From NCBI GenBank assembly GCA_964035545.1, contig OZ037771.1:15285289-15349288 (forward strand): DNA of 64,000 nt, in the 5' to 3' direction. Source of the DNA: Bugula neritina. Lineage: Eukaryota; Animalia; Bryozoa. The notes under the pieces were generated by a model. It worked only from the letters and a program-made list of their open reading frames with translations. It did no database searches and was not told the origin of the DNA. Numbering within the stretch: the first letter of the stretch is position 1; each line of letters begins with the position of its first letter. Shown here in pieces: positions 19,533-61,992 of this stretch. The position numbers and the translations under genes are program-made.

Positions 19533-20455
19533 ATGAAAGAAGTGGTACAAGCTACTGCTGCAGTCTGCTGCTTCGTAGCCTTAGTGCTCACAGGAGCTCG
19601 GGCTGCCAGTGACGATGCCAAGTATTTGCTGTTTGAAGACACCAAGCTATCTGGTGATGAGAATGTTATAAGAAGCTTTACCGTGCCTCTTGTGGTAAGC
19701 TGTAGATTACACCTTATCTTATCTCAGTTTAGTGTATACTGTTCACTACACATATTCCGTAGCTATAATATATACTGTGTATTACACTTTATCAGCGGCT
19801 GAGATATTATGCTTCAAATATGACTCATATATTAAATTTTTTAATGAATATATTTAATTACTTTGTTCTGTCTATGTGTAATTGATAGAGCATTCTGTAC
19901 ATTACATCTTCTCCTACCGTGTATTCTGTACATTACATCTTCTCCTACCGTGTATTCTGTACATTATACCTTCTCCTACAGTATATTCTGTACATTACAT
20001 CTTCTCCTACAGTGTATTCTGTACATTACACCTTCTCCTACAGTGTATTCTGCACATTACACCTTCTCCTACCATATATTCTGCACATTACACCTTCTCC
20101 TACAGTATATTCTGTACATTACATCTTCTCCTACAGTGTATTCTGTACATTACACCTTCTCCTACAGGGTATTCTGCACATTACACCTTCTCCTACAGTG
20201 TATTCTGCACATTACATCCTCTCCTACCATGTATATTCTGCACATTACACCTTCTCCTACTGTGTATTCTGTACATTACACCTTCTCCTACCGTGTGCAT
20301 GTACTTGCAGACCTTCTGCTCAGTACACTGTGTTGCTGACCCTGACTGCGTATACTTCACACTCAATGAGACTGATGCTACAGAGTGTACTCTCTACTCG
20401 GCCTTCAACAGGACCAACATCCAATCAGCTCCAGATATACACAGCTACTTGAGAT
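19533..20455 (+). other. Signal peptide and N-terminal PAN/apple-like domain
   Basis: [21 protein letters not shown]|[30 protein letters not shown]: the C-x3-C-x5-C-x2-F...C-x-L pattern typical of PAN/apple domains. Confidence 0.75.

Positions 20456-61992: not shown

Follow-up and report, generated by a model that had tools for sequence, protein, structure and literature searches.

The question raised by this locus is whether a long series of small, seemingly unrelated open reading frames (ORFs) in the genome of the bryozoan Bugula neritina belongs to one gene and, if so, what kind of protein this gene encodes. The DNA analysed here, referred to throughout as the window, is a stretch of 64,000 nucleotides (assembly GCA_964035545.1, contig OZ037771.1, positions 15,285,289 to 15,349,288 of the forward strand). 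It has a G+C content of 28-46% and is plainly eukaryotic, with short ORFs between repeat-rich spacers. Within the window, 89 exons on the + strand (19533-61992, a gene span of about 42 kb) join into a stop-free frame of 13,503 nt that encodes 4,500 amino acids (aa). This is one intact protein-coding gene. Its product begins with a predicted signal peptide and an N-terminal PAN-like domain, continues with 41 modules of 85-115 aa and ends in a C-terminal part of 186 aa. A preliminary description of the window, made from the sequence alone, had proposed a frame of about 13.5 kb pieced together from dozens of small ORFs, with 41 modules between an N-terminal PAN-like domain and a distinct C-terminal domain; the frame exists without an internal stop, and all of these parts were recovered in the assembled model. 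The protein is probably a multivalent extracellular scaffold, by analogy with other secreted PAN proteins, and would belong either to the body-wall matrix or to an adhesive or mucous secretion.

Exons, introns and reading frame

The 88 introns (87 GT-AG and one GC-AG) range from 77 to 2,105 bp with a median of 221 bp, and their phases match throughout. The exons up to module 41, 84 in number, account for 4,314 aa with zero stops, and the length of each module is divisible by three. An in-frame stop lies two codons 5' of the ATG at 19533. At the other end the TAA stop codon occupies 61990-61992, with an AATAAA at 61971-61976 inside the last exon, and both limits of the gene had been placed correctly in the preliminary description. 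Between the modules the assembled gene model contains neither an internal start codon with a signal peptide nor a terminal exon, and an Rfam scan of the window returned no RNA family. Exons were joined in a local script for length, composition, alignment and the ratio of nonsynonymous to synonymous substitution rates (dN/dS), while the database searches used single exons.

The 3' end of the model was initially affected by a phase conflict. This was resolved because the orthologous protein of another bryozoan, Watersipora subatra (P0001 in the following), exposed a small linker exon, X0, at 59993-60060. A phase-1 acceptor near 60585, which had been considered for exon X1, was dropped after the ortholog revealed X0; a read-through end at 61856-61858 was also dropped, as the ortholog supports a small last exon, X4. 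The donor at 60673 in the intron between X1 and X2 (AAG/GCGAGT; here and below the slash marks the boundary) is the sole non-GT donor of the gene and is demanded by both the reading frame and the ortholog. The exons and modules are arranged as follows:

Exon 1: 19533..19694, + strand; ATG, predicted signal peptide and start of the N-terminal PAN-like domain; phase-0 donor GTG/GTAAGC
Exon 2: 20311..20455, + strand; core of the N-terminal PAN-like domain, C-x3-C-x5-C-x2-F-T-L...C; ends in phase 1
PAN modules 1-15 (exon A and exon B each): 21075..35956, + strand; identified by motif, phases and alignments
Modules 1-5: 21075-21562, 22091-22610, 22688-23538, 24088-24673, 24966-25772, + strand
Modules 6-10: 25994-26561, 27301-27821, 28130-28888, 29409-29959, 30675-31151, + strand
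Modules 11-15: 31601-32098, 32253-33132, 33215-34127, 34750-35382, 35472-35956, + strand
PAN modules 16-29 (seven near-identical short/long pairs): 36064..46856, + strand; characterised by exon versus intron identity and dN/dS
Modules 16-20: 36064-36526, 36733-37174, 37723-38145, 38262-38706, 39645-40388, + strand
Modules 21-25: 40505-40946, 41161-41583, 41700-42140, 42379-42801, 42918-43359, + strand
Modules 26-29: 43542-44690, 44807-45247, 45871-46298, 46415-46856, + strand
PAN modules 30-40: 48962..58742, + strand; identified by motif and phases
Modules 30-35: 48962-49440, 50103-50555, 50793-51230, 51544-51986, 52188-52593, 52852-53411, + strand
Modules 36-40: 53727-54214, 54354-54841, 55414-56376, 57102-58114, 58221-58742, + strand
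PAN module 41, terminal variant C-x3-C-x6-C: 59153..59786, + strand; exon A 59153-59300, exon B 59677-59786
Linker exon X0: 59993..60060, + strand; phase-1 acceptor, phase-0 donor; conserved in P0001 and in the environmental contig L034
C-terminal domain exon X1: 60550..60672, + strand; GC donor
C-terminal domain exon X2: 61130..61281, + strand; ...NWFS...SWSDL; weak paralogs on contig C1
C-terminal domain exon X3: 61648..61820, + strand; RTFYLHH..C..EGWLMVV..C.W...PTFIYS
Last exon X4 with stop: 61949..61992, + strand; matches the P0001 C-terminus ...FYVLMIYMSFN

The protein starts with MKE, followed by a hydrophobic core (about 17 residues) and by ARA/AS; this reads as a predicted signal peptide. 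This N-terminus is the only hydropathy window above 1.6, and no other stretch of transmembrane length is present. The proposal of a single giant secreted protein without a transmembrane segment has thus held up, with 89 phase-consistent exons, one predicted signal peptide and an ortholog model that also joins the modules to the end domain. The mature protein has a mass of about 494 kDa, an isoelectric point (pI) of 4.25 and a net charge of about -340, with all modules net negative (sum -338). Its composition includes 10.8% Ser, 9.6% Asp, 8.2% Thr and 7.5% Tyr, together with 172 Cys and 20 N-x-S/T sites. From the sequence we infer that it has no catalytic, membrane-anchoring or signalling part.

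Fold and arrangement of the modules

Each module is encoded by two exons, A and B, and the intron between them runs through the most characteristic part of the module. Real modules contain the motif C-x3-C-x7-C-x2-[FYWV] 40 times, always on the + strand and directly before a phase-2 donor (AG/GT in 37 instances, with AA/GT, GG/GT and GC/GT making up the rest). The remaining matches to the motif fall in intron minisatellites, in low-complexity stretches of Cys and Val; with a single exception these are on the + strand as well. The full motif with F-S-[YF] is not found inside single ORFs of the window because it spans the phase-2 intron (F/S-Y). On the 3' side of each A exon there is essentially one acceptor which completes the split codon, mostly to Ser, and continues into [YFW]...C-x-[IV]-P, although a few modules have a second candidate acceptor and module 39 was placed by hand. 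Every A exon has its matching B exon, which starts with [S]-[YFW] and holds the fourth Cys, usually within C-x-[IV]-P. The introns bounding the modules are all of phase 1, with good donors and acceptors. Exactly four Cys are present in 41 of the 41 modules; exon A contributes three of them and exon B the fourth, and none varies in the alignments. The C-x3-C-x7-C spacing, which had been described as invariant, is found in 40 of the 41 modules; the exception is module 41, where it is x6.

A profile of the A exons gave 41 matches in the 216-Mb genome, and 41/41 lie inside the window. The array is therefore a single gene and not a dispersed family, and such a set of matches cannot arise by chance.

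The nature of the modules was established on the ortholog. Against P0001, Pfam reports PAN_1 (PF00024) at 68 bits in five stretches and PAN_4 (PF14295) at 32.8 bits, with cut-offs of 21.4 and 27 bits, respectively. One P0001 module (residues 86-176), folded with AlphaFold2 (AF2) using an alignment of four sister modules and 31 A exons of the window, gave a model with strand, helix and strand elements, a predicted local distance difference test score (pLDDT) of 92 and a predicted template modelling score (pTM) of 0.83. The top Foldseek matches of this model are all PAN/apple domains, with a probability of 1.00 and template modelling (TM) scores of up to 0.63: plasminogen, the HGF N domain, FXI/prekallikrein, an Eimeria PAN domain, Sarcocystis SML-2, and the PAN-bearing proteins HAI-1 and Colletotrichum copper oxidase. 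VIA-align also puts plasminogen at the top (Z 9.4, root-mean-square deviation 2.5 A over 77 residues), finds 27 chains at Z of at least 8, among which the HGF N domain scores Z 8.7, and adds TgMIC4, leech LAPP and AMA1. Profiles of the A exons and of P0001 found nothing significant among the PDB sequences. The predicted structure thus shows that the modules have the PAN fold. Of the earlier designation as PAN/apple-like, the PAN part stands, on the Pfam matches of the ortholog and on a confident model whose structural neighbours are PAN/apple only. The strict apple domain, which has six Cys and a third disulfide from the first to the last Cys, is ruled out by the four Cys per module.

Modules 2-40 alternate between a short type (94-103 aa, mostly CYR-x-C) and a long type (103-115 aa, mostly CY[VIM]-[AT]-C) that carries a polar tail of 10 residues. 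Mean identity between modules is 37% at the same parity and 28% at different parity. Together with the strict alternation, this implies that the ancestral repeat was a pair. Modules 16-29 are seven young tandem copies of one such pair, all of which keep the frame, the Cys and the splice sites. In these copies the exons are more similar than the introns (identity 0.93 versus 0.74 and 0.96 versus 0.925), and the short and long types have dN/dS values of 0.28 and 0.71, respectively. This shows that even the youngest copies are under purifying selection.

Relatives, end domain and surrounding sequence

Among 1.84 billion protein representatives, the A-exon profile found 54 matches, of which only one is a spliced relative with several modules: P0001 of Watersipora subatra (XP_067949120.1, annotated as uncharacterized; E 1e-38), with five modules. 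The P0001 model is 647 aa long and has the same end domain but no signal peptide. The last module and the end domain are 43% identical between the two proteins, and both proteins end in ...MSFN. P0001 also shares the intron position within the motif and the terminal x6 module with its linker exon, and is likewise acidic (pI 4.5). Judged by sequence and intron positions, P0001 is the ortholog. The RefSeq model is probably cut short, because two more split-motif modules (L017:1422 and L017:5412) sit upstream of it in the Watersipora locus (L017; OY755167.1, 42720454-42752068, reversed), beyond a transposase ORF (L017:6092-7066, minus strand).

Environmental contigs of different origin contain 2-3 tandem modules with the same phase-2 donor, and in one of them, L034, the terminal x6 module, orthologous to module 41, and the linker exon X0 are present as well. 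With Watersipora and these contigs, the gene is therefore present in at least three or four species. The only other match of the profile in several stretches is weak (E 7e-6) and concerns P0037, a protein of 1,860 aa from an ENA environmental contig. P0037 is large and rich in Cys, and GLGSSDDCYAKCQASGATKCVW is repeated in it at least six times; this PAN-like C-x3-C-x7-C motif goes unrecognised by Pfam. No described protein with the architecture of the Bugula gene was found in the databases and papers searched, and a literature search found no paper linking bryozoans with PAN domains. This agrees with the preliminary description, which knew of no such protein: the protein scan yielded a fragment model of 647 aa, itself uncharacterised, and single-exon ORFs.

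The C-terminal part of 186 aa is encoded by exons X0-X4 and aligns lengthwise with the end of P0001. Neither the exons nor the ortholog domain have a Pfam match, and no PDB match was found by sequence, as expected of the distinct, unnamed domain that had been proposed here. Its core, NWFS...S-W-[ST]-D...R-x-F-x-I...C-x-x-D-x-G-W...C-x-W-E...P-x-I-x-Y-S, is also present in a few unnamed ORFs found by profile search. With the end domain of P0001, a word-based search finds P0001 only and a profile search finds six short unnamed ORFs. Structural comparison reaches further: in the ESM Atlas, the end domain of the P0001 model matches two mollusc clusters which also have PAN_1 (TM 0.86-0.87), a cnidarian cluster automatically named “fibrinogen C-terminal domain-containing” (TM 0.84) and, over about 150 residues, clusters of ficolin-1 and ANGPTL4 (TM 0.50). 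An AF2 model of the end domain from a shallow alignment reached a pLDDT of 39 and was not used for fold search. The end domain belongs to an unnamed “PAN-associated” family. Weak relatives of exon X2 are found in four tandem small genes on contig C1 at 32.42-32.46 Mb (L013-L016, L030). When read further upstream, L030 carries PAN-like exons 5' of the end-domain relative, a layout that matches the small mollusc architecture seen in the ESM Atlas.

On sequence (Pfam and hhalign) and on intron phase, the end domain was rejected as a member of the fibrinogen family. A genome search with Pfam Fibrinogen_C gave at least 155 exon matches, none of them in the window among the 150 of 155 matches listed. 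When the end domain was compared by hhalign with fibrinogen exons of the same genome, the probability was 0.1-0.25%, and at the nearest comparable intron boundary the phase differs between the two. A fibrinogen-like fold of the end domain, as suggested by the predicted structures, is a lead and not a result. The at least 155 matches point to a strongly expanded repertoire of fibrinogen-related domains (FReD) in this bryozoan; canonical FReD genes lie in tandem clusters on contigs C1 (23.28-23.37 Mb), C8 (6.19-6.37 Mb) and C4 (19.27-19.41 and 24.24-24.31 Mb).

Almost half of the intron sequence of the gene consists of minisatellites (49%, or 14.2 of 29.0 kb; periods of 10-152 bp), compared with 47 bp in 13.5 kb of exons. 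They occur in 40 of the 88 introns, and the 40 units span many different periods; examples are the arrays at 30086-30676, 46998-48964, 59279-59645 and 61280-61616. An array ends no more than 10 bp from the donor, or runs over it, in 17 introns, and the same is true of the acceptor in 8 introns, so that copies of the splice site are often part of the repeat unit. In-phase acceptor copies, “ttag/AC”, number 25 in intron 20 and 65 in intron 60, where the array is open in the reading frame.

Upstream of the gene, two neighbours on the + strand look like ordinary housekeeping genes. The exons at 5233-6484 have mitochondrial-carrier motifs, and those at 10457-12685 have the motifs of an alpha/beta-hydrolase of the epoxide-hydrolase type (HGWPGS..., GGDWGS), both recognised by eye. 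The second gene is followed by a 4-kb minisatellite at 12683-16748 (39 bp x 103, also 158 bp x 26) that starts exactly at a GTAAGT donor-like site, and this site ends an exon of the epoxide-hydrolase-like gene. As the introns of the giant gene show this pattern too, minisatellites that start at a donor may be a general feature of this genome.

Possible functions and significance

PAN/apple domains are well-known binding modules which normally occur in one to about a dozen copies. The HGF N domain binds heparin, the PAN domains of TgMIC4 and SML-2 bind galactose, and leech LAPP binds collagen. Across solved PAN domains, the ligands are heparin, glycans ending in galactose, collagen or partner proteins. 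In the scaffold that we consider probable, 42 small PAN modules of four Cys each, presumably locked by disulfides and joined by linkers of about 10-20 residues, would form a bead-like rod of about 150 nm, along which many weak PAN-glycan or PAN-protein contacts could add up to high avidity. The end domain might serve as a separate head for binding or assembly. Such a rod would be found in the secreted matrix of the body wall, either in the cuticle or in the skeletal organic matrix, or else in an adhesive or a mucous secretion.

The functional analogy that we favour is with the PAN-ZP proteins of ecdysozoans. NOAH-1/2, NompA and LET-653 build apical matrices, and multi-PAN proteins of this kind build matrices linked to the cuticle. 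Like the bryozoan protein they are secreted and have several PAN domains, but they differ in closing with a ZP polymerisation domain and, usually, a membrane anchor, neither of which the bryozoan protein has; its last part is the unnamed domain instead. The PAN domains of plasminogen and HGF share with the modules the four-Cys core C-x3-C...C...C and one helix packed on an antiparallel sheet, at an identity of just 13-18%; in those proteins, however, a single PAN domain precedes kringles and a protease, while 42 PAN domains and no kringle or protease are present here. Apicomplexan microneme adhesins combine tandem PAN domains (six in TgMIC4, two in SML-2) with secretion and multivalent binding of sugars or host factors, and Eimeria EtMIC5 has 11 PAN/apple domains. 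Compared with these adhesins, the bryozoan array has 4-7 times more copies, a strict alternation of subtypes, a very acidic character and an extra C-terminal domain, and it belongs to an animal gene. The fibrinogen domains of ficolins, angiopoietin-like proteins and FREPs resemble the end domain in their position as a C-terminal head and possibly in fold (TM 0.50 in the ESM Atlas); there is no relation in sequence, the intron phase differs, and the N-terminal subdomain seems to be absent from the end domain.

Several points weigh against a PAN scaffold encoded by one giant gene. Single module exons of the window give no Pfam match, because the intron splits the domain, and exon 2 alone gives a weak PAN_1 match (E 0.025); the PAN assignment of the window modules is transferred from P0001 and the alignment. 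The gene is known here from genomic sequence, and the 1.84 billion protein representatives contain no spliced multi-module product beyond P0001. The repeats in some introns carry many acceptor copies, any of which may be the one in use. The acidity and the richness in Tyr, Ser and Asp fit several roles equally.

The reliance on genomic sequence also leaves room for the view that this is not one functional gene at all, with the exons belonging to separate small tandem genes or to an untranscribed or decaying repeat array that looks spliceable. For this species and its close relatives the databases hold only unspliced single-exon ORFs, and the RefSeq ortholog model has just five modules, although the upstream Watersipora modules suggest that this model was cut short. 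An explanation of this kind is very improbable given that 88/88 introns have usable, phase-matched splice sites around a frame with no stop in 13.5 kb, that no internal start with a signal peptide or terminal exon separates the modules and the median intron measures 221 bp, and that 41/41 modules keep their four Cys with exons more conserved than introns. If one gene is accepted, its product could still be a humoral immune agglutinin. The array of PAN modules, with an end domain that is lectin-like and fibrinogen-related, would then bind sugars on microbial surfaces and clump microbes or trap them, be it in the coelomic fluid or at the surface, in parallel with invertebrate FREPs and ficolins. 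The ESM Atlas neighbours of the end domain (ficolin, ANGPTL4 and the fibrinogen C-terminal domain-containing cluster), the sugar-binding lectins SML-2 and TgMIC4 among the structural matches of the modules and the ongoing change in copy number seen in the young tandem copies all agree with such a role. We nevertheless regard it as unlikely, as the end domain is not fibrinogen-related by sequence (Fibrinogen_C and the profile-profile comparison are both negative), the gene is single-copy where immune lectins usually form diversified families, and dN/dS is below 1.

A protein of the skeletal organic matrix, that is, a polyanionic framework which would bind Ca2+ and chitin and steer the deposition of calcium carbonate in the zooid wall, has about the same low probability as the agglutinin. 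The pI, the Asp and Ser content and the charge of the protein, the acidity of every module and the acidic pI of the ortholog fit this role, and a comparative shell-proteome paper lists PAN among the domains of phosphatic lophotrochozoan shells (PMC13425148). Against it, the acidity resides in folded domains and not in the Asp-rich low-complexity runs that are typical of acidic shell proteins. Bugula neritina is also a lightly calcified species. The broader reading of a multivalent scaffold in the body-wall matrix or in an adhesive or mucous secretion is preferred to all of these. A bolder version of it is conceivable but rather doubtful: the array would be the largest PAN array of any protein and a hyper-expanded member of an undescribed lophotrochozoan family with “PAN plus cryptic fibrinogen-like head”, its twenty alternating pairs would make up a rod, polyanionic and about 150 nm long, that serves as a main structural or adhesive fibre of the body wall or of larval attachment, and its copy number would still be changing by unequal crossing-over.

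Marine invertebrates commonly have giant secreted proteins built like strings of beads, and the gene does not represent a new principle; its product is an extracellular binding protein of a known kind, in an extreme form that had not been described. What sets it apart is the strictly alternating, strongly acidic array of 42 domains joined to an unnamed end domain, an architecture not found in database entries or papers. It defines a small family of “PAN plus unnamed C-terminal domain” proteins, with four small paralogs in this genome and with mollusc and cnidarian relatives seen as structure matches in the ESM Atlas only; the end domain can now be studied within the context of this family. To our knowledge, the proteins of bryozoan cuticle, skeleton and adhesives are almost unknown at the molecular level. 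As a single-copy, conserved giant gene, the one described here is a concrete candidate for a component of bryozoan cuticle, skeletal or adhesive material.

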